A DNA stretch of 64,000 nucleotides from Saccharolobus solfataricus P2 (GTDB lineage: Archaea > Thermoproteota > Thermoprotei_A > Sulfolobales > Sulfolobaceae). Location: NCBI RefSeq assembly GCF_000007005.1, contig NC_002754.1, one strand, 5' to 3'. Both the position numbers and the translations under genes were made by a program. The stretch's first letter is position 1; every line of letters starts with the position of its first letter. This document shows positions 3,579 through 38,168 of this stretch, in pieces. Below the pieces are notes generated by a model. That model saw nothing but the letters and a program-made list of their open reading frames with translations. It was not told where the DNA came from and ran no database searches.

Positions 3579-4109
3579 ATGGTAACCATTGCCTTAGGTA
3601 GTAAAAACCCTGTAAAAATCAGTGCTACTAAGGAGGCATTGGAGATTTTAAGGTTGAATTGGGACTTAATAGCAACTGATATCGATAGTGGGGTAGATAA
3701 ACAACCTTTTTGTGATCAAACGTATGTTGGTGCTAGAAATAGGGCATTGAACGCGATAAAGGCTACCAATGCAGATATAGGATTAGGGATAGAGGGAGGG
3801 GTTTGCAACGTCTACGGTAAGTTTATAGCAAATGCTGTTGTATATGTTATCACTAAAGAAGGTGTAGAGAACTTTGCAATTTCATCATCTTTTACCTTAC
3901 CTAGTTCTATTGTTTCTTTAATACTTCAAGGAAAGGAATTGGGCGAAGCGTCAGATATTATTTTTAAAACTATTAATAGTAAGACTAAGGAAGGAGCTGT
4001 GGGACTATTAACTAATAATATAATTGATAGAAAAACACTTTATGTCCAACCTATTATTCTCGCATTATATCCAATTTATAATACAATTATCAATAATACT
4101 CTTTTTTAA
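3579..4109 (+). CDS. yjjX: Inosine/xanthosine triphosphatase (YjjX family)
   Basis: [22 protein letters not shown] and GAVGLLT motifs. Confidence 0.9.
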
Positions 4110-5219: not shown

Positions 5220-6134
5220 ATGACAAAACTTGTAATTGTAGGCAGTGGAATAACAGGTTTAATTACTGCATTGAAATATGGTGGAGATGTGATAATTTTA
5301 GAGAAGAACAAAATTGTTGCACATAATTCAAAAGCCAGTTTATGGTCAATTATTCCACCATTATGCGGTAACCACAGAGAAGATTGTGAAAAAGGTATAA
5401 GATTTTATGAAGAGATTTGCGAAAAATACGGTATCTATTGTAAAAAGACCCACGTTATTAGGGTCTCCAGTAAAAAGCTAGGTGGTAAGATAATAGACAG
5501 AAAGGAAATAAGAAGTATAGAACCTCAATTGGATATAGAGGAAGCAGAACTTTTTGATGCTGGTCTCTTTGTGGAGGGGGATGAGCTATTTAATACACTT
5601 GGAACTGAATTTAACGTAGAGTCGAATTCCGAGGTTACGGATATAATAGTTAGAGATAATGAAATTAAATCTCTTATAACATCTAAGGGTGAGATAAAAG
5701 GAGAGTTTTATATTTTTGCTACCGGTTACCTAACTCCTAAATTATTCTCCAAATTAGGAATAGAGGTAAATCTATTTAAAGGACATTTAGTAATTACCAA
5801 AAAAACAAGTTTAAATGGAATATTGATCGTAAATGATAGAATTGCAGTTGAGGGCAAGAACTTATACTTAAATGGCGACTCTAAGCCAAATTCCTCTTCA
5901 GCAGTAGATTATGATGAAATTTCTAAGACTATTAATGAAATCGCCAATGTACTAAAGATAGATACAAACAATCTAGAGATTAGGGTAGGATTCAGAAGTG
6001 TAAGTAAAGATGGGGAACCAATTGTAAAGAAGATTTATTCAAATGGCATATTAATTACAGGTCATAGGTTTGGTTTTGCGTTAGCTCCAATTCTTGCTGA
6101 GAAAGCTATACAGATGATCAAATATGGACATTAA
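5220..6134 (+). CDS. FAD-dependent oxidoreductase (D-amino-acid oxidase family)
   Basis: VIVGSGITG Rossmann motif; GFRS and GHRFGFALAP C-terminal motifs. Confidence 0.85.
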   Translation: MTKLVIVGSGITGLITALKYGGDVIILEKNKIVAHNSKASLWSIIPPLCGNHREDCEKGIRFYEEICEKYGIYCKKTHVIRVSSKKLGGKIIDRKEIRSIEPQLDIEEAELFDAGLFVEGDELFNTLGTEFNVESNSEVTDIIVRDNEIKSLITSKGEIKGEFYIFATGYLTPKLFSKLGIEVNLFKGHLVITKKTSLNGILIVNDRIAVEGKNLYLNGDSKPNSSSAVDYDEISKTINEIANVLKIDTNNLEIRVGFRSVSKDGEPIVKKIYSNGILITGHRFGFALAPILAEKAIQMIKYGH

Positions 6135-14224: not shown

Positions 14225-14892
14225 GGGCAGAAGACTTATTTAATGATCCAAAAAGTTATAAGAGATGGTACGAACTCCACTCTAAGCTATACGAGAATGA
14301 GAGAAATGTAGTTAGAAGTTTTAACCTTAAAGATTGTTTAGATGTAGGATCGGGACCAGATATTTTTCATGAAGAAATTGGAGGAAGAATTGTAGCTCTG
14401 GATATATCGTTACTTATGCTAAAAGAAAGTAAAAGTGACGAGAAAGTGCTAGCTGATGCTTTACATTTACCCTTCAGAGATAACTCATTTAAATGTGTCT
14501 TCAGTTCTGTCACCGTCTGCTTTATAGAAGACGTAAAGGGATTTATAAGGGAGATGGCTAGAATAACTAAAGAAAGAGCAATTATTTGTTTTATAGCCAG
14601 GGATTCTCCGTGGGGTGAATATTATGAGAATCTAGGCAAAAGCGGCCATAAGTATTATTCGCATGCTCGCTTTATATCAAGAAGAGAGTTTTACGTAATT
14701 ATAAACGATTTCATGAAAATTTCTAGAATTAGATCCACGCTAAAAAAGATGAGCGAAACAGAAATCGATGGAGTTTATAACGATGATAGTGGGTCATTTA
14801 TATGTGTGGAAGCTATTCCTATGAAACCGGAGCCCCTTTCATTGAGTCTTAACAGACACTCGGGGGCTGATCCTGCTGACCCTATTTCTTAA
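14221..14892 (+). CDS. Class I SAM-dependent methyltransferase
   Basis: LDVGSGP and ADALHLPFRDNSF motifs; the C-terminal tail overlaps an antisense structured RNA. Confidence 0.88.
   Translation: MRAEDLFNDPKSYKRWYELHSKLYENERNVVRSFNLKDCLDVGSGPDIFHEEIGGRIVALDISLLMLKESKSDEKVLADALHLPFRDNSFKCVFSSVTVCFIEDVKGFIREMARITKERAIICFIARDSPWGEYYENLGKSGHKYYSHARFISRREFYVIINDFMKISRIRSTLKKMSETEIDGVYNDDSGSFICVEAIPMKPEPLSLSLNRHSGADPADPIS
14811..14884 (-). ncRNA. H/ACA-type pseudouridylation guide, predicted target 16S rRNA U8
   Basis: Upper stem AGCCCC/GGGGCU with K-turn-like GA..UGA; pocket strands GCAGGAUC and CCGG complement CCGG-UU-GAUCCUGC at the 16S 5' end; AUA box 14 nt below the stem; upstream BRE-TATA. 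Lower stem is weak. Confidence 0.7.
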
Positions 14893-23294: not shown

Positions 23295-23456
23295 CTACAT
23301 TAATATACTAATCCAAGGTTTATAAACTTTAATTATACTCTAACTTAATATTGTTATCATTCCATCACACATAATAATACTGTTCCAAGTTACTAGAAAG
23401 CTTACATAAAGAAGTACTAATTAAAATTATTAGTATATTCCTCCTATTTAAGCTTA

Positions 23457-23509
23457 ACGTGATGAATAACTCCAATCCTGATCAATGATGTAGTAACTCG
23501 CGACTGAAT
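23457..23509 (+). ncRNA. Box C/D methylation guide sRNA
   Basis: C GTGATGA (23459), 12-nt guide, D' CTGA (23478), C' ATGATGT (23485), 12-nt guide, D CTGA (23504). Confidence 0.9.
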
Positions 23510-30548: not shown

Positions 30549-31186
30549 GTGATAGAGAGGAATTAAGCGCTAAACTTAGGATAATATTGAGGGATATAAG
30601 ATATCTTACTGTTCTAAAACACTTGAAAATTGCTAATGTAGACTATGGTAAGTCGATAATGCTAAACACTAAGATTCCATTGACTGAGATAGTTGAGATA
30701 TTGGATGACCTTGAAAAATTAGGTTTAATAGAGAGAGTTCACGGTGCAACCCTAAAGAATACTGAAGCCAAATTTAAGCTTAGTTCTGAGGTACACAAGC
30801 ATCACACGTATTATAGACTCACCAGAGAAGGAGATCATCTATTAAGGCATTTAGATGATAGAATGTTAATCGATGTCTATATGGATATCGTCAAGAATGA
30901 TAATCTAGCGTTAAATATTCTTAGACTAGCAGATGAACTTAACGCAGATCATGCCCTAACGTATGCAAAATTGACTCATAAGAGACTAGAAGAGATTACA
31001 CCAAAGATTGAGGAGTTAGTTAAGATGGGATTATTAGAAGAAAAGAATTCGAAGATAATTAAATTTGCCGATAGAAAAGCTAAGCCGAAAAAGGAAACAA
31101 GGACTCACCATAAATATTACGGTCTGTCAAGGATTGGAGAATTAGTGGTTAGGGAGATGAAAAGAAGGGGGATTTTACCTAAGTAA
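30545..31186 (+). CDS. Tandem winged-helix protein (DUF2250-like)
   Basis: Two homologous units, each ending in H(K)H.YY.L(T/S)R.G. Confidence 0.7.
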   Translation: MSDREELSAKLRIILRDIRYLTVLKHLKIANVDYGKSIMLNTKIPLTEIVEILDDLEKLGLIERVHGATLKNTEAKFKLSSEVHKHHTYYRLTREGDHLLRHLDDRMLIDVYMDIVKNDNLALNILRLADELNADHALTYAKLTHKRLEEITPKIEELVKMGLLEEKNSKIIKFADRKAKPKKETRTHHKYYGLSRIGELVVREMKRRGILPK

Positions 31187-32122
31187 TTCTTTTACATTAT
31201 GTATGACTTTTGGTATAGCTTCTGTAATATCTTCATTTATAATTGTGTTGTAATTCTTTTTAACTATTTCACTTATTATTTCATCTATTTTTCTTCTCGC
31301 TATTAACTCAACTATTTTAGCTCTTCTGTCTATTATTCTCTTTTTAAATAACTCTTTTTGTTTCAAATAATTAAGATGATCCTCTATTTTGTTCACTAAT
31401 TCAATAATTCCCTCATTTTTTATTGCTACAGTCTTAACAATAAGTGGTTTCCATCCATTTCTGTAGGAAATCTCTGCACTATCAATAGCGAATTTTAGTG
31501 TATTAAATGCCAATTCAGCATCTTGTCTGTCAGCCTTATTTAAAACGTATATATCTCCAATTTCCATTATTCCAGCCTTCAACGCTTGTATATCATCTCC
31601 CGCACCGGGTATTGATACTACTAAAATTGTGTGAACACTCTGCTCTACTTCCGTATCTGTTTGTCCAGCCCCTACGGTCTCTATTATTATTTTATCATAT
31701 CCTAATCCATCTAGAGCTTCAGTAAGCATTAGTGCTTCTGCTGAAATTCCACCAAGATATCCTCTAGATCCTATACTTCTCACGAAAACGTTTTTGAGCA
31801 TTGTCTTATCTTGAAATCTTAACCTATTTCCCATAAAGGAACCCATAGTGTATGGACTAGATGGGTCTATTACTATCACTCCAACTCGATGCCCTCTAGA
31901 TACGTATTCTTGGATTAATCCGCCTATTATGGTACTCTTCCCTGACCCGGGGATTCCGGTTATGCCAATAACATGTGCATTTCCCGATCTTTTTGAGAGA
32001 GTTCCTAATGCACTTATTCCTTCATCGGTCATGTACTCAATCTTTGTTAATAACCTAGCTATTGCTAATTCATTTCCATTTAATGCTTCTTCTATTAATT
32101 TTGATAAATTGTTATTCAACAC
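31175..32122 (-). CDS. meaB: Methylmalonyl-CoA mutase GTPase chaperone MeaB/ArgK
   Basis: [21 protein letters not shown] and NKAD motifs. Confidence 0.93.
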
Positions 32123-32537
32123 TTATACCTCTTTTTTCCCTTGCTACCTTTTTAACCTTCTCTACTATTTCTTTAAGACTACTACCAGGCAGAAAGACTT
32201 CATCAACTCCCATTTCTTTTAACTTTTTAATATCCTCTGGCGGTATTACTCCTCCAACTATTAATCCTACATCATTTAATCCATTTTGTTTCATTATCTC
32301 TACTACTTTTGGTATCAACTCCAAATGAGCTCCGCTTAATATGCTAATTCCTATAACGTCTGCGTCTTCCTGCAATGCAGCTCTTACTATCTGTTCTGGA
32401 GTTTGTCTTAATCCAGTATACACTACCTCCATTCCCGCATCTTTTAGTGCTCTTGCAACTACTTTTGCCCCTCTATCGTGCCCATCTAAACCTAATTTTG
32501 CCACAATAACCTTAATTCTTTTTGTTGTAATCATCAT
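32112..32537 (-). CDS. Methylmalonyl-CoA mutase, B12-binding subunit
   Basis: [10 protein letters not shown] and GLRQTPE motifs. Confidence 0.95.
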
Positions 32538-32647
32538 TATTACTAATACTTAAAACGTTTAAACTTTTTGCTAATCGTTTTGTTTACCCTTAAGGTCGAT
32601 AAATATGGGTAAAAGTTTAATAATCACGCTTATTAAACACTCATCAT

Positions 32648-32935
32648 ATGTTTAAGATGTGGTATCTTCATATCTCTATTGCAATAATTGCACTGATTCT
32701 ATCTAGCTTAGTAGTGTTGGAATTCGTTAGAATGAGAAAAGAATTTAGAGGGAAGTTAACTACAGTCCTAGTATTGCTTGGTAGCTTTTTAATTGCTCAA
32801 TTTGGATCCTTTCTCTTAGACTTTATCATGTGGTCAAATGATAAGAATCCTTTATATATTTATCCATCTTTGTTGACTATTTCCCTTTCATTCATTACTA
32901 TACTTTTATTCTACTATTATGTTACAAAGATTTAA
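32648..32935 (+). CDS. Small three-helix membrane protein
   Basis: Three hydrophobic segments in 95 aa. Confidence 0.7.
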   Translation: MFKMWYLHISIAIIALILSSLVVLEFVRMRKEFRGKLTTVLVLLGSFLIAQFGSFLLDFIMWSNDKNPLYIYPSLLTISLSFITILLFYYYVTKI

Positions 32936-33329
32936 GTTTTTTATATTTTCTACCCACATCATAAACTGATATCATAGTAATTATGAAAATTATTATTAAT
33001 GAAAATATGTCAGCTGAAAAGGGATGGCTTATAATAAGATATATTAGGATTATAAGTGAGGAGGCTAGAAAAGAAGTAAGAAACACGGATCTAGGAATAA
33101 GTGCACTTCTAAACCTTACGTAATCTTCTAATATTACTTTAGTAACTATATACCCTTCATCAACTTCCTTAACTAGCCCATCTTCGATCAGTTTCTTAAT
33201 ATGATAACTTACGATGGATGGAGAACTCAAATTAAGATCCTTTTGTATTTTCCTAATTCCAACTGGCCTTCTCTGCCTAAGAAGGTATAGGTATATTCTC
33301 TTAGCAGTCCCTGTCAACTCCTCTTCCAT
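32922..33329 (-). CDS. Membrane-anchored winged-helix regulator
   Basis: GIRKIQKDLNLSSPSIVSYHIKKL wHTH followed by two TM helices. Confidence 0.8.
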   Translation of the reverse strand: MEEELTGTAKRIYLYLLRQRRPVGIRKIQKDLNLSSPSIVSYHIKKLIEDGLVKEVDEGYIVTKVILEDYVRFRSALIPRSVFLTSFLASSLIILIYLIISHPFSADIFSLIIIFIITMISVYDVGRKYKKLKSL

Positions 33330-33511
33330 TAACTACATATAGTTTTACGTTACAAATAAGGTTTTCTATCTAAAAATCTAGTTTCCCCTAATTCCAAATA
33401 TCTTCTGTTCACATAAATAAGCAAATTGGAAAATTCTCATAACTTGATAAACTCAAAAAAGATTGCTAGGGTAGGGCAGTTTCTTACAATCGTAAATAGT
33501 AGATAGCTGTA

Positions 33512-34072
33512 GTGAATAGATATATATACCATGTGGATATCGTAGTTAATGTGAAGCAGTACTTAATGGTTATCGCTGGCGTGTTAGTTAGCTTAGCCAT
33601 TGCGTCTTTAGTAGTTTATATCTCTCATATGTTTATAATATATAATATAAAGAAGCCTAACATAGTGGAGCGACAATCTGGTTATTTTCCGGAAATGTAT
33701 GAGTTAACTGTAAATATAACACCAGCAAAGGCAAGCTATGCGAATTCCTATCTTATCTGGTCCCCTCTCCAATCTTCTTTAGTAGTTAACAAAGATCCGA
33801 TATTTCACGTTTATCCGAGTATAATTGATTTGAATTCATTTAATAATTCTGTTATAATAACTCTTTATTACTCGGTTCAAGATAGAGTAAATATAGCTAT
33901 AACTCAGCAAATTTTTAATGTTAGCGTAGTTAATACTACTGTAATTAACGATGAGATTGTAGCTACTCAACTAAAAGTTACATTCTATAACGCGTCTCCA
34001 AATACGATATATTTAATTCCGATATGGAACCAGTATAATGTTACGTACTATGTTCTAGTCTACTATGAGTAG
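33512..34072 (+). CDS. Membrane-anchored exported protein
   Basis: N-terminal TM helix and many N-x-S/T sequons; start uncertain. Confidence 0.7.
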   Translation: MNRYIYHVDIVVNVKQYLMVIAGVLVSLAIASLVVYISHMFIIYNIKKPNIVERQSGYFPEMYELTVNITPAKASYANSYLIWSPLQSSLVVNKDPIFHVYPSIIDLNSFNNSVIITLYYSVQDRVNIAITQQIFNVSVVNTTVINDEIVATQLKVTFYNASPNTIYLIPIWNQYNVTYYVLVYYE

Positions 34073-34123
34073 GTCAGTCCATCGACCTTTCTTCACTAAT
34101 CAAGATGATGTTGGCATCATCAT
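34072..34123 (-). ncRNA. Box C/D guide sRNA (3' module of possible composite RNA)
   Basis: Minus strand reads ATGATGA-TGCCAACATCATC-TTGA-TTA-GTGAAGA-AAGGTCGATGGA-CTGA. Confidence 0.82.
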
Positions 34124-34193
34124 GTGCCCCGTTCGGCTGTGAGCCTTTCACTCGTTTTATAATTTCTCGTCAGGCCCAGATAGGGAACGGGGC
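34123..34193 (-). ncRNA. H/ACA guide hairpin (5' module of possible composite RNA)
   Basis: 9-bp lower stem GCCCCGUUC/GAACGGGGC, pocket CCUAUC/CAGCC, 7-bp upper stem, K-turn-like CUGA..GUGA, ACA 14 nt below the upper stem. Confidence 0.78.
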
Positions 34194-34678
34194 TTTCTCA
34201 ACCTTTTATATAATCTATACAAGAATATAACAATTACTATCTGACCTATATCCAACTGTAATGTAGCAGCATGGTTATAAACTATTTCAATGAGAAAAGG
34301 TAGCATTTGCATCTGCGGTCTCCATACGTACCATATGAGGTAATAATTAAGGTAATTTAGAAATACAAAACTTATAGCAGATGTGTCTATGATCATGTTG
34401 TAATAATCATTTTTAAAAGTAGAGATTAATAGAATAGATATTATAAATATAATTAGCGCTATAAATGCAGAAAATGAGACTCCTACCGGAATCGTAAGAT
34501 TATATGTTACTCCACTACTTGCTCTATATACAAGCGGTTCATCTATTGGAACTAAAGGAGCCATTGAAAGTAGTATAATCGTCAATATTATTGAACCCAC
34601 TAACACCCAAATATAATATTCAGAATTTTTCATAAGCGATATGGGTATATAATAAATTATAACTTTATTCCTCATCAT
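34157..34678 (-). CDS. Hypothetical multi-pass membrane protein
   Basis: About four hydrophobic segments; the stop codon lies in the loop of the H/ACA hairpin. Confidence 0.7.
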   Translation of the reverse strand: MMRNKVIIYYIPISLMKNSEYYIWVLVGSIILTIILLSMAPLVPIDEPLVYRASSGVTYNLTIPVGVSFSAFIALIIFIISILLISTFKNDYYNMIIDTSAISFVFLNYLNYYLIWYVWRPQMQMLPFLIEIVYNHAATLQLDIGQIVIVIFLYRLYKRLRKPRSLSGPDEKL

Positions 34679-34680
34679 CT

Positions 34681-34810
34681 GCTTTGTGGACTTATTGAAT
34701 TTTCACATAGGGTTAATATTTATTGCAAACCTAAATTGTATATCTTCAGATTAATTGAAAGGGCACTAATAGTGGTTTAGTGTAAAAATATTCAACAGAT
34801 TAACTAAGCA
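34681..34810. mobile_element. SM3-like MITE, copy 2 (~130 bp)
   Basis: Starts GCTTTGTGGACTT and is homologous to 14930-15060; imperfect flanking repeats CTCATCAT/CTCAGCAT. Confidence 0.65.
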
Positions 34811-34864
34811 TCTCAGCATTAAGTATATCTATATATAAAATCCTTTAGCAAGTTATTTCATGTT

Positions 34865-35170
34865 ATGTCTACCACAAAAAAATTCTATGAACTTCAAGAT
34901 TTAATTTTAGCCAAGGTGTCCTTAGAAAAGGTAAAGTTGCATATCGAAGAAAGGAAAGATAGAACAATTTTCAAATGGGTTAGAAAAGAGTTAACAGGGT
35001 TTTTCAGAAAATTTTCTAACGTAGAAGAATTTAGAGAATTGGTGAATAATATTAATAAAGGGCTAGAAGAGGAAAACTATGAAGTAGTTCTTGAAAATAT
35101 CAAAAGATCATTGGATATTATATCAGAGGAAATCGAAAAATTCTATCAAGATTTACAGAAAATGCAATAA
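34865..35170 (+). CDS. Hypothetical helical protein
   Basis: 101-aa charged amphipathic ORF. Confidence 0.7.
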   Translation: MSTTKKFYELQDLILAKVSLEKVKLHIEERKDRTIFKWVRKELTGFFRKFSNVEEFRELVNNINKGLEEENYEVVLENIKRSLDIISEEIEKFYQDLQKMQ

Positions 35171-36034
35171 TTCTACTACTCCTACTCTATTTATGTACAT
35201 CGTATATATAGCAACTACTATAATAATTATTGCAAATAGTTTCCTTAAAGTTTGTCTTGGCATTCTTGACGCAATTGTGGATCCAGTATATCCACCAACT
35301 ACTCCTCCTAATAGGTATAGTAAGCTTATCACTATATCAACATACCCATACACCGCGTATGTAATTGCTGCCGTAACACCAAACGTACCTACTGCAATTA
35401 GTGATGTACCGACAGCCCTAAGCATATCTAAACCAGTGCTGAACAATAAACCTGGAACTACCAGAAACCCTCCTCCTATTCCGAAGTATCCAGAGGCAAA
35501 CCCTACTAAAAACCCTGCTGGGATTACTTTAGTTACTTTTATTCTTTCACGTAGACTCAATTTATGAGAGTTATTGTATAATACGCTTCTATTAGGATTG
35601 CATTTAGATCTCCACATTCTAATTGCTACTGCGATCATCAGAAAGCCGAAGAGAAATAGGATTAACGCCCCCGACATTAAATGGCTCAGATAAGCCCCTA
35701 TTACATCCCCTATTACTCCTGGAATTGTGAATATTATTCCTTCTGGTACTCTAACATTACCTCTCCTAAAATGCATATAAGAGTTGATGTAGGAATTTAG
35801 ACCGACCGCAAGTGCTGTAGTTCCTAAGGTAAGATGTGTTATATAGGTATATTCTGGTGATCCAGGTGGAATTCCATTTGCTAAACCTACAAAGTATAAT
35901 AGAAGGGGAATTGCGAGAATCGAACCTCCTCCTCCAATAAGACCGAGGCTGAATCCTACCAATATTCCAGAAATGATAGAAAGCAAGTATTGTAATTGAG
36001 TTACGGTGATTTGAAATGTTGGATCTTGAAACAT
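35153..36034 (-). CDS. Sulfite exporter TauE/SafE family permease
   Basis: GLIGGGGSILAIP and GYFGIGGGFLVVP repeats. Confidence 0.9.
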   Translation of the reverse strand: MFQDPTFQITVTQLQYLLSIISGILVGFSLGLIGGGGSILAIPLLLYFVGLANGIPPGSPEYTYITHLTLGTTALAVGLNSYINSYMHFRRGNVRVPEGIIFTIPGVIGDVIGAYLSHLMSGALILFLFGFLMIAVAIRMWRSKCNPNRSVLYNNSHKLSLRERIKVTKVIPAGFLVGFASGYFGIGGGFLVVPGLLFSTGLDMLRAVGTSLIAVGTFGVTAAITYAVYGYVDIVISLLYLLGGVVGGYTGSTIASRMPRQTLRKLFAIIIIVVAIYTMYINRVGVVELLHFL

Positions 36035-36182
36035 AATAACTAAATCTTGTTTTAACTTTAAAAAGTTTATGATTATGTAAAACTTTGTAAGTCCTTTTAA
36101 AGCTAACTTTATTAAATTTGTTAGACTTTTCTTTAATAAATGATTTTTAAGCCAAGTTATAATATCATTATGTAGAGATGAG

Positions 36183-36605
36183 AGTGTTGATAGTAATTTT
36201 ATTAATTTAAAATAAATTGTGTAAATTGTTTTTGCGTGTGGAATAAGTCCTTTTGCTTAGCGTAATATCTTTTTGGGTGAACGTAGTTATCATGAGGGGA
36301 TTGCGAGTAAGTACTTTAGAATAGGGTAGTTTACTTGCACGATGGTTTATCAGTTTACAATGCCTTTGATTGGTTTAATGTTGGGCACAAGAGGGTTACG
36401 TTAGGCGATTACACTGAAGAAGGGTTTAGGAAATTAAAGTATAGAGTCTCTTCAATGGACTTCGCTTGTAATTCCAATAAGTTAATGAGTTGGTTCTCGA
36501 CCTTCTTCTTAATCTACAACCTCCTTTACATTCAAGTGTATTTAGTGGATAAGGGAGTGATGATAAATGCAAACATTTCAACTACATGAAATTGTTGTCC
36601 ACACT
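36183..36605 (+). mobile_element. IS6-family (ISC774-like) deletion derivative, 423 bp
   Basis: Near-identical to 10771-11550 but lacking 10869-11225 (357 bp); left inverted repeat decayed, right repeat intact. Confidence 0.88.
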
Positions 36606-36615
36606 CAGATATGAT

Positions 36616-36778
36616 GGGCAATTCAGGTATCCATTATGAATTCACTTTATTTCAAAGAAGCTACGAAATTAACTAAATGAAGGCGACTAACTAGCAGAGA
36701 TACACGATTACCAGTATTAACATTTTTATAACTGCATTATTCGCAAATTGCAATTCGCAAAGAAGAGCTGAATCGCCC
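36616..36778. mobile_element. SM4-like MITE (163 bp)
   Basis: Inverted repeats GGGCAATTCAG/CTGAATCGCCC; 8-bp target duplication GATATGAT/GAAATGAT; same end type as the 11561-12032 relic. Confidence 0.75.
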
Positions 36779-36844
36779 GAAATGATAAATTAACGCTTTA
36801 GATCCAAGGTTTATGATTAAAAACTCTTGCATGAATTCGCCAAA

Positions 36845-37243
36845 TTAGAGCGGTATCTCTAACCCGTGTGGACAGTAAGAAGGCTTTCCTAAGTAATTAT
36901 ACAATTTATCGATAATCTCCTCGGGTATAAGATAGTCAAACTGTTTGGAATATTCACAAGCTGTTTGTTTATCTATTCCAATATTAACAAGTAGTATCTC
37001 TATCACTCTATGAGCTTTTATTAGGTAATTTATACTTCTCGTTCCATTATTGGTAATCCACACGCCATCTTCTTTCTTTTTCACTAATCCTTTCTCTTCT
37101 AAATGGGATACTTCCTCAAAAACGCTTGACGGAGCTATTTTTAGATCCTTTGCAATTCTATTTATCTTTGCACCTTCCCCACTGTCATTGTATCTTTTTA
37201 TGGTAAGCAGATATGAGAATTCTCTTCGTGATAAGTTAGACAT
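36845..37243 (-). CDS. DtxR/MntR-family metal-dependent repressor
   Basis: YLLTI, IAKDLKIAPSSVFE, HRVIEILL and CPHG motifs. Confidence 0.92.
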   Translation of the reverse strand: MSNLSRREFSYLLTIKRYNDSGEGAKINRIAKDLKIAPSSVFEEVSHLEEKGLVKKKEDGVWITNNGTRSINYLIKAHRVIEILLVNIGIDKQTACEYSKQFDYLIPEEIIDKLYNYLGKPSYCPHGLEIPL

Positions 37244-37298
37244 CTGTGAATCAACTCTCAATAAAAATAAATAAAGTTTTGTTCTAAAACATACAATC

Positions 37299-38168
37299 GT
37301 GAAAGAGAATATTTCCGCTCTTGTTACACCCTATGACGATAAGGAAAATATAAATACTGAAGCGTTACAACAGCTATTGGACTTTTTAATTAAAAAAGGA
37401 ATTAAGGACTTTTGGGTTCTTGGCACTAGTGGAGAGTTTAATATGCTTTCTCAAGATGAGAGAATATTAGTAGTTAGTAAAATACGTGAGATGGTTAAAG
37501 GTAAAATATATGTAGGTGTCAATGAGAACTCAACCAGAAATAGTCTAATATTAGCTAAAAAATACTATGATCTAGGTGTTGATTATATTTTTTCAGTTCC
37601 ACCTATTTATCATAAACCTTCAGAAAAAGGACTAATATCGTATTTTAGCGAGTTGCGTAATGCTATAGATTTACCATTATTCATATATAATATACCCTCC
37701 TTTACAGGATATAATGTTCCTCTTCATATAATTGAGAAGCTAGCGAGAGAGTACGTATTAGATGGTATGAAGTACTCAACTACAGATTTTGTCTCTTTTC
37801 TAAAGTATTTAAAGGCACTAAAAGGAGTAAATAAGAACTTCAAAGTATTCATTGGCGAGGATAGGATGATCCTTTCCGCTCTTATTTTAGATACTGATGG
37901 TGCAGTTTCTGGTATTTCCAATTTAGTTCCTGAATTAGTCACCAATTTATTCTTGGAATTTGATAGAGGTAACATTCAGAGGGCTATAGAGATTCAGAGA
38001 ATTTTGAACAAATTGGTAGACGTGGTAAGTTTAGGCGATTATCCCAGTGGTATTAAGATAGGTTTAAGGTATAGGGGAATTAATGTCGGTAGTGTTAGGA
38101 AACCTTTATTAGAGGATAGTAGAGCCGAAGGTGAAATATATAATGTACTGAAAGAATTAGGTATATAG
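37299..38168 (+). CDS. DapA/NAL-family class I aldolase
   Basis: GTSGEF, YNIPSFTG and GMKYS (Schiff-base Lys) motifs. Confidence 0.88.
   Translation: MKENISALVTPYDDKENINTEALQQLLDFLIKKGIKDFWVLGTSGEFNMLSQDERILVVSKIREMVKGKIYVGVNENSTRNSLILAKKYYDLGVDYIFSVPPIYHKPSEKGLISYFSELRNAIDLPLFIYNIPSFTGYNVPLHIIEKLAREYVLDGMKYSTTDFVSFLKYLKALKGVNKNFKVFIGEDRMILSALILDTDGAVSGISNLVPELVTNLFLEFDRGNIQRAIEIQRILNKLVDVVSLGDYPSGIKIGLRYRGINVGSVRKPLLEDSRAEGEIYNVLKELGI

Follow-up and report, generated by a model that had tools for sequence, protein, structure and literature searches.

We analysed a stretch of 64,000 nucleotides (nt) of the Saccharolobus solfataricus P2 genome (contig NC_002754.1), referred to here as the window, and describe the small RNA (sRNA) gene that occupies its minus strand from 34193 to 34072. 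The gene consists of a classic archaeal H/ACA hairpin with a box C/D guide immediately 3' of it, and measures about 122 nt. We are nearly certain that this locus is the known Sso1/Sso-159 gene, one transcription unit with two tandem guide modules. It is a real and ordinary locus that is already known: publications from 2005 to 2009 described it as a composite, showed that it is expressed and assigned a function to its H/ACA half.

The locus therefore carries little weight as a discovery: it has been published, and a homolog was confirmed genetically in 2024. What is new here is the exact complementarity between guides and targets, the covariation of guide and intron, the spacing of the 23S ribosomal RNA (rRNA) targets, the structural covariation and the conservation of the tandem. 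We see the value of the analysis in an independent confirmation at the level of sequence, and in the observation that the tandem was kept in at least three Sulfolobales genera while its junction drifted.

Architecture of the gene and its published counterpart

The stretch around the gene (window positions 31157-37678, 6,522 bases) is 100% identical to S. solfataricus P1 LT549890.1, a record with proteins that NCBI names as S. solfataricus; the gene is expected there at about 2.151 Mb. We compared the gene in eight loci: the window, L015 (S. tengchongensis), L016, L040, L041 and L042 (uncultured Sulfolobaceae), L018 (S. metallicus) and L167 (S. acidocaldarius). The seven loci outside the window were reached via homologs of the upstream membrane-protein gene and of the neighbouring UDG gene; the UDG of L018 is 100% identical to the Sulfuracidifex metallicus protein. 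For Acidianus sulfidivorans no homolog was on record. The elements of the gene, all on the minus strand, are as follows.

34072-34193, minus: whole composite sRNA gene, Sso1 H/ACA plus Sso-159 C/D (sequence, fold, identity with LT549890.1, published RNA of about 120 nt)
34185-34193, minus: H/ACA lower stem, 5' strand GCCCCGUUC (fold; 4 of the 9 lower-stem pairs with double-sided changes)
34179-34184, minus: 5' guide CCUAUC (pairs with G37 and intron AUAGG of the tyrosine transfer RNA precursor, pre-tRNA-Tyr)
34172-34178, minus: upper stem, 5' strand UGGGCCU (fold; 6 of the 7 upper-stem pairs with double-sided changes)
34147-34171, minus: K-loop, GA (34171-34170) ... UGA (34150-34148) (GA and UGA invariant in 7 orthologs)
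34140-34146, minus: upper stem, 3' strand AGGCUCA (fold, covariation)
34135-34139, minus: 3' guide CAGCC (pairs with G30 G31 C32 U33 G34 of tRNA-Tyr)
34126-34134, minus: lower stem, 3' strand GAACGGGGC (fold, covariation)
34123-34125, minus: ACA box (14 nt from the target-U position)
34117-34123, minus: box C AUGAUGA (A34123 common to ACA and box C)
34104-34116, minus: D' guide UGCCAACAUCAUC (imperfect complement of 23S GAUGUCGGC, E. coli A2503 / U2506-C2507 region)
34100-34103, minus: box D' UUGA, degenerate (sequence, orthologs)
34090-34096, minus: box C' GUGAAGA (sequence, orthologs)
34078-34089, minus: D guide AAGGUCGAUGGA (pairs with 23S CAUCGACC, E. coli U2479 equivalent, Sso U2621)
34074-34077, minus: box D CUGA (invariant in orthologs)

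The first-pass annotation of this stretch had described an H/ACA hairpin fused to a C/D sRNA at 34072-34195. Every element that it listed was located on the minus strand and the fold agreed with it; the composite gene lies where it was placed, except that the hairpin starts at 34193 and not at 34195. The minimum-free-energy fold has the H/ACA shape, with a lower stem of 9 base pairs (bp), a 6/5-nt pocket and an upper stem of 7 bp. The whole RNA had a z-score of -4.1 and the hairpin by itself one of -3.8, and none of the 200 shuffled sequences folded equally well.

Within the hairpin, the K-loop CUGA ... UGA surrounds the apical loop and is kept in seven orthologs; it agrees with the tandem-GA K-turn or K-loop that classic archaeal H/ACA RNAs carry 5-6 bp above the pocket, and it is the predicted binding site of L7Ae. 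The apical part between GA and UGA has 19 nt, and a single A separates UGA from AGGCUCA. The distance from the target U to the ACA box is 14 nt (5-nt guide plus 9-bp stem), within the 14-16 nt of classic H/ACA RNAs, and the same distance was found in S. metallicus and S. acidocaldarius. After ACA the strand reads UGAUGA-UGCCAACAUCAUC-UUGA-UUA-GUGAAGA-AAGGUCGAUGGA-CUGA-CC. Boxes C, D', C' and D thus follow each other in order, with a D' guide of 13 nt, a D guide of 12 nt and a linker of 3 nt between D' and C'. ACA ends with A34123, and box C (AUGAUGA) takes this base as its R.

Box C and the D' guide were also observed to be self-complementary (34104-34122, minus strand). They can form a 7-bp hairpin GAUGAUG/CAUCAUC in S. 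solfataricus; hairpins of 5-7 bp are present in L015, L016, L041 and L042, and are not found in L040, S. metallicus or S. acidocaldarius.

This description corresponds to published RNAs. The Sso1 H/ACA sRNA of S. solfataricus guides the formation of pseudouridine 35 (Psi35) in intron-containing pre-tRNA-Tyr(GUA) (Muller et al. 2009, PMC2651775), and Psi35 was made in vitro by the reconstituted Sso1 ribonucleoprotein (RNP). According to PMC2651775, a C/D motif lies immediately next to the DNA for Sso1, Sto1 (S. tokodaii) and Sac1 (S. acidocaldarius) ("directly flanked"). In S. solfataricus this motif is Sso-159, at the 3' end of Sso1; the other orthologous pairs are Sto1 with sR4 and Sac1 with sR39. 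The same paper credits Tang et al. 2005 with the cloning of Sso-159 as a 120-nt RNA. It also reports two forms on a Northern blot, a long one read as H/ACA together with C/D and a short one read as H/ACA alone. It gives a distance of 14 nt between the Sso1 target U and ACA, and proposes Sso-159 as the guide for methylation of 23S U2621, and also of 2645 and 2648 (PMC2651775). Sso1 was later classified as a "10/5/9" fold (Toffano-Nioche et al. 2015, PMC4652768), and the RNA in the window has the 5-nt 3' guide and the 9-bp lower stem of that fold.

We compared the locus with Sso1 and Sso-159 by description, not letter by letter, and detected no difference. They agree in species, single K-turn hairpin, 5-nt 3' guide, 9-bp lower stem, ACA at 14 nt from the U, C/D module immediately 3', total length of about 120 nt, target (U35 and the intron of pre-tRNA-Tyr) and spacing between 2621 and 2645. 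The first-pass annotation knew of no described archaeal case, which has to be corrected: the same locus had been published as Sso1 with Sso-159, and Pab21 with snoR9 of Pyrococcus abyssi is a further one. Its expectation of a single RNA of about 120 nt was borne out by the 120-nt Sso-159 clone and the long form on Northern blots; this form is not the sole species, since the short H/ACA form also occurs.

Among the relatives, sR115 of S. islandicus resembles our locus in being a classic H/ACA RNA that is associated with Cbf5 and guides U35 of tRNA-Tyr(GTA) across the intron; the main text of PMC11077068 differs in making no mention of an attached C/D module. In that species only two classic H/ACA RNAs were found, one of which is sR115, and sR115 co-purifies with Cbf5 (PMC11077068, 2024). 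Its deletion "specifically abolished" Psi35 of tRNA-Tyr and slowed growth (PMC11077068).

Sac1 with sR39 (= Sac-sR103) and Sto1 with sR4 share the order of H/ACA and then C/D, the 3' guide CAGCC and the D-guide core GGUCGAU. S. acidocaldarius Sac1 differs in its 5' guide UCCUCC, its 3-nt spacer (ACA GUU AUGAUGA) and the lack of overlap with an open reading frame (ORF), while its C/D module has a canonical D' box CUGA and a D' guide that pairs with 23S without mismatches (one G.U pair). P. abyssi Pab21 with snoR9 (PMC4652768) is likewise a single archaeal transcript with H/ACA 5' and C/D 3'. It comes from a euryarchaeon, has rRNA targets and is known to us from the publication; we found no sequence relationship with our locus.

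Targets of the two guide modules

The H/ACA pocket predicts a target of the form GGCUG-U-N-GRURGG. We obtained the tRNA-Tyr gene of S. solfataricus by scanning metagenomes for tRNA-Tyr, selecting low-GC genes with an intron, and passing from these through the adjacent spermidine synthase gene to the S. solfataricus copy. A scan of viral contigs for tRNA-Tyr gave nothing from Sulfolobales. The gene lies at 1925-2014 of locus L164 and reads CCCGCCGUAGCUCAGCCCGGUUUAGAGCGCCCGG-CUGUAG/AUAGGGGACAGUA/A-CCGGG.... Its precursor carries GGCUG-UA-GAUAGG, which forms 5 Watson-Crick pairs with CAGCC and 6 with CCUAUC, and leaves U35 and A36 unpaired in the pocket. A target pattern of this type was found once in L164, not at all in the 64-kb window and not at all in shuffles of either. 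As in the Sso1/sR115 family, the pocket therefore pairs with the anticodon arm and intron of pre-tRNA-Tyr(GUA), with U35 in the pocket. No complementarity between the C/D guides and tRNA-Tyr was seen by eye.

Comparison among Sulfolobales agreed with this assignment. The first 7 nt of the intron (AUAGGGG) were constant in four tRNA-Tyr variants with the S. solfataricus type of target, while the rest of the intron differed, as expected if the H/ACA guide constrains these nucleotides. The 5' guide of S. metallicus is UUCCAUC, which pairs with GAUGGAA, and the matching tRNA-Tyr (L165/L166) reads GGCUG-UA-GAUGGAA. Relative to S. solfataricus, A-U was exchanged for G-C and G-C for A-U. On these sequences the guide and the tRNA-Tyr intron covary, as seen in S. 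metallicus.

In an S. islandicus-like contig (L045, with a spermidine synthase 99% identical to that of S. islandicus) the tRNA-Tyr gene is identical to the S. solfataricus copy. Most Sulfolobales tRNA-Tyr(GUA) copies (L164, L045, L066, L079, L093, L165) have the T-loop GGUUCAAGUCC, G at position 59 and an intron of 13-15 nt. The S. acidocaldarius tRNA-Tyr was not found at the syntenic site, so the pair of Sac1 guide and target was left incomplete; from the guide UCCUCC we predict an intron that starts with GAGGA behind G37, so that GGAGGA would face the guide.

The neighbourhood of tRNA-Tyr in L164 contains genes for FKBP, LSm, L37e, spermidine synthase and S-adenosylhomocysteine (AdoHcy) hydrolase, in common with L045; the portion with LSm, L37e and spermidine synthase is also present in the S. 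metallicus-like L165. Two further tRNA genes lie nearby on the minus strand of L164, tRNA-Met(CAU) at 3906-3981 and tRNA-Leu(CAG) at 5357-5443.

The C/D module points to 23S rRNA. Eight base pairs join the core of its D guide, GGUCGAUG, to 23S CAUCGACC; opposite the fifth nucleotide upstream of box D is the U that corresponds to E. coli U2479. All eight orthologs have the core GGUCGAU unchanged, and six of them have GGUCGAUG. In the D' guide GCCAACAUC, which pairs with GAUGUCGGC, the fifth nucleotide lies opposite the counterpart of A2503 (Sso 2645). The two predicted targets are 24 nt apart, the same distance as between the published S. solfataricus positions 2645 and 2621. Our offset in 23S numbering lies within 2 nt of the statement for S. 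islandicus that U2597 = E. coli 2457 (PMC11077068). We infer methylation at these sites, which the literature gives as predictions only.

In S. acidocaldarius, an abundant C/D sRNA of about 59 nt was identified by RNA-seq as Sac-sR103 (Dennis et al. 2015, supplement); we located it immediately downstream of the Sac1 hairpin. The D' guide of S. metallicus also matches 23S, and its D' box is AUGA. The D' half looks weakened in the Saccharolobus-like clade, because its members have a degenerate D' box (UUGA or UAGA) and 1-2 mismatches in the D' guide (23S U2506/C2507). This half may be undergoing decay, or box C may be masked by the hairpin that it forms with the D' guide.

Several points weigh against the identification of the locus and its targets. 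The 23S pairings were judged on domain V of the S. acidocaldarius 23S rRNA (as aligned by Dennis et al. 2015, supplement) and not on the 23S rRNA of S. solfataricus itself. The D' guide has an A.C mismatch at the universally conserved C2507, in addition to the degenerate D' box UUGA. No Rfam family was found at the locus at gathering thresholds, and relaxed thresholds gave weak matches of 13-19 bits to Sulfolobus C/D families over 34072-34131; Rfam contains no H/ACA family for this RNA. The bounds 34072-34193 were read from the sequence, and the promoter and RNA ends are putative. Finally, identity with Sso1/Sso-159 appears from organism, architecture, target and target spacing and not from a letter-by-letter match; identity to the letter is therefore presumed. 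A search of the literature with the string GGCUGUAG returned unrelated microRNA papers only, and a search of a plasmid collection with the locus gave no match.

Conservation of the tandem and alternative readings

For the covariation of the stems we used an alignment of seven sequences, from which S. acidocaldarius (L167) was left out. In this alignment 10 of the 16 stem pairs had double-sided changes and 94.6% of cells remained paired. None of the 500 shuffles reached the observed covariation and no slid register came near it. The K-loop GA/UGA, box C UGAUGA, box D and the core of the D guide were invariant, while the interior of the K-loop varied in sequence and length. With S. acidocaldarius included, the 3' guide had CAG in seven of eight orthologs and UAG in L040.

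The junction between the modules was variable. ACA and box C overlap by 1 nt in S. solfataricus and L040, and they are contiguous, without overlap, in S. tengchongensis and L042. Spacers were found in L016 (2 nt), S. acidocaldarius (3 nt, GUU), S. metallicus (4 nt, GUUA) and L041 (5 nt). On this comparison the conserved feature is the tandem order with a near-zero spacer and not the shared A. The first-pass annotation had built its case for one RNA on this shared A, which is real in this genome; as a design it is not conserved, being present in two of eight orthologs where the others have spacers of 0-5 nt. Likewise, conservation of the junction in Sulfolobales, named there as a check, holds for the tandem, kept in all eight orthologs, and not for the exact junction, which ranges from -1 to +5 nt. 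The tandem was kept across Saccharolobus, Sulfuracidifex and Sulfolobus acidocaldarius despite different flanking genes.

Two orthologs contain complementary ends around the C/D module. In S. metallicus (L018 2590-2700) the last A of ACA together with GUU pairs with AACU after box D, which gives a canonical 4-bp terminal K-turn stem, and in L041 (about 800-880) the spacer of 5 nt, UAAUA, is complementary to a UAUUA that follows box D. A conserved terminal K-turn stem of the C/D module was found only in these two and not in the other orthologs, including S. solfataricus.

We propose that the unit is probably transcribed as a single RNA, because -1 to +5 nt between the modules leave no space for a second promoter. 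The RNA would accumulate as the form of about 120 nt and as separated modules, and we infer co-transcription from one promoter with partial processing at the junction. In the H/ACA module, the K-loop would be the site for L7Ae, and the lower stem with the ACA box that for Cbf5-Nop10-Gar1. The module would pair with pre-tRNA-Tyr(GUA), both in the anticodon arm and at the start of the intron, and direct the conversion of U35 to pseudouridine prior to splicing, since the guide needs the intron. This guided Psi35 would replace the crippled aPus7 of Sulfolobales. The C/D module, with L7Ae, Nop5 and fibrillarin, is predicted to use its D guide for 2'-O-methylation in the peptidyl-transferase region of 23S rRNA, at Sso U2621 = E. 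coli U2479, while the weaker D' guide would point 24 nt downstream, to Sso 2645 = A2503.

The RNA of about 120 nt might itself be the functional species, carrying Cbf5 and fibrillarin RNPs simultaneously like a composite small Cajal-body RNA (scaRNA) and coupling both modifications. We consider this unlikely. The long form does exist, and the tandem order with its very short junction (-1 to +5 nt) was kept in the eight Sulfolobales orthologs. Moreover, P. abyssi Pab21/snoR9 has the same 5'-to-3' order in one transcript (PMC4652768). The A shared in S. solfataricus and L040 precludes two intact products from one molecule, and purification of Cbf5 also brought down fibrillarin, Nop5 and many C/D RNAs, which the authors ascribed to indirect binding (PMC11077068). 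However, Northern blots also contained the short form, read as H/ACA only (PMC2651775), the C/D part alone is annotated in S. acidocaldarius as the abundant Sac-sR103 of about 59 nt, and Sso1 alone is active in vitro. The overlap of ACA and box C is not conserved, and the substrates of the modules (pre-tRNA-Tyr and 23S) are unrelated, so no functional coupling is evident.

By analogy, one may picture the long form as a working bifunctional particle of Cbf5-Nop10-Gar1 and Nop5-fibrillarin with up to three L7Ae, in which the H/ACA lower stem would replace the missing terminal K-turn stem of the C/D module; this too seems doubtful to us. If true, Archaea would have an equivalent of the composite guide RNPs of eukaryotes. 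In U85, the H/ACA domain is said to lie inside the C/D domain with C/D boxes at both termini, and both guides reportedly act on the same small nuclear RNA and the RNA carries Cajal-body signals. The locus in the window shares with scaRNAs of the U85 type the presence of C/D and H/ACA guide domains in one RNA. Unlike in these, its modules stand in tandem and are not nested, have unrelated substrates and are at least partly separated.

As for the H/ACA pocket, the first-pass annotation had assigned it to 16S rRNA, at a sequence CAGGCUG-UC-GGUGGG. That the pocket guides Psi in 16S at GGCUG-U-C-GGUGGG, solely or in addition to tRNA-Tyr, we regard as very improbable. The sequence was correct in so far as it occurs in the 16S rRNA of S. 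acidocaldarius (as CAGGCUG-UC-GGUGGGG), in a region aligned to approximately E. coli 240-260 (supplement of PMC4644070). This 16S rRNA and not that of S. solfataricus was used to judge the pairing, in which the site forms 5 Watson-Crick pairs on one side of the pocket and 4 Watson-Crick and 2 G.U pairs on the other. We estimate that such a match arises by chance in about 4.5 kb of rRNA approximately once in 1000 cases, which makes it more than a trivial finding.

Nevertheless, the pocket is a perfect complement of pre-tRNA-Tyr around U35. None of the eight 16S sites in the complete Psi map of S. islandicus rRNA (U8, 58, 477, 747, 930, 943, 1009, 1162) lies near, all of them were assigned to other guides, and deletion of sR115 led to loss of Psi35 in tRNA-Tyr only (PMC11077068). 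For Sso1, Sto1, Sac1 and Mse2, no target in rRNA was identified by Muller et al. (PMC2651775). The guide differs by species (CCUAUC, UUCCAUC, UCCUCC), with the changes in S. metallicus following the tRNA intron, and the S. acidocaldarius guide UCCUCC, set against the 16S site of that species, gives a U.U mismatch in the centre. The match in S. acidocaldarius 16S could be due to chance, or it could remain from an earlier rRNA target.

It is least probable, to a degree that we give it almost no credence, that the modules are accidental neighbours, two independent sRNA genes that have promoters and ends of their own. In favour of this, a short form of the H/ACA part is known, the C/D part has been annotated separately and the length of the junction is variable, but a spacer of -1 to +5 nt is too short for a promoter, the arrangement was kept across Saccharolobus, Sulfuracidifex and S. 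acidocaldarius despite different flanking genes, and a long transcript was observed.

Neighbouring genes and other small RNAs in the window

Two ORFs border the sRNA gene.

34157-34678, minus: upstream ORF of a membrane protein on the same strand (overlaps the 5' half of the hairpin with its last 12 codons)
33512-34072, plus: convergent ORF (stop codon directly next to the sRNA 3' end)

The overlap of the hairpin with the final codons and stop of the membrane-protein gene had been recognised in the first reading of the window, and we confirmed it: the TAA stop (34159-34157) sits within the apical loop of the hairpin. The 173-amino-acid product of this ORF is unchanged in LT549890.1. Overlap of ORF and hairpin, with the stop codon in the apical loop, was found in six Saccharolobus-like loci (window, L015, L016, L040, L041, L042), and in L016 the stop of the ORF is the K-turn UGA itself. 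It was not found in S. metallicus, where the membrane ORF ends ahead of the sRNA, or in S. acidocaldarius, where the ORF is absent. The tail of the membrane protein looks like an extension into the RNA gene (34157-34195), because the overlap is confined to the Saccharolobus-like clade, the S. metallicus ORF stops before the RNA and S. acidocaldarius has no such ORF.

In the six orthologs that were counted, a TATA-like TATATAA precedes the hairpin by 20-27 nt; its spacing suits the start of the hairpin only in S. acidocaldarius.

The window contains two other sRNA candidates. At 14819-14877 on the minus strand there is a match to Rfam PyrR209, a Pyrobaculum H/ACA-like sRNA, with 42.6 bits at a gathering score of 42. 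This RNA contains GCCCC...AAUGAAAGGGGCU, and also the K-turn heptamer UGAAAGG that had been noticed as common to it and to our hairpin. S. islandicus has atypical H/ACA RNAs without ACA (sR109, sR136, sR148, sR563), and this RNA probably corresponds to one of them. At 23455-23509 on the plus strand we found a box C/D sRNA, with a full-length match to Rfam sR9 of 44.2 bits at a gathering score of 36.

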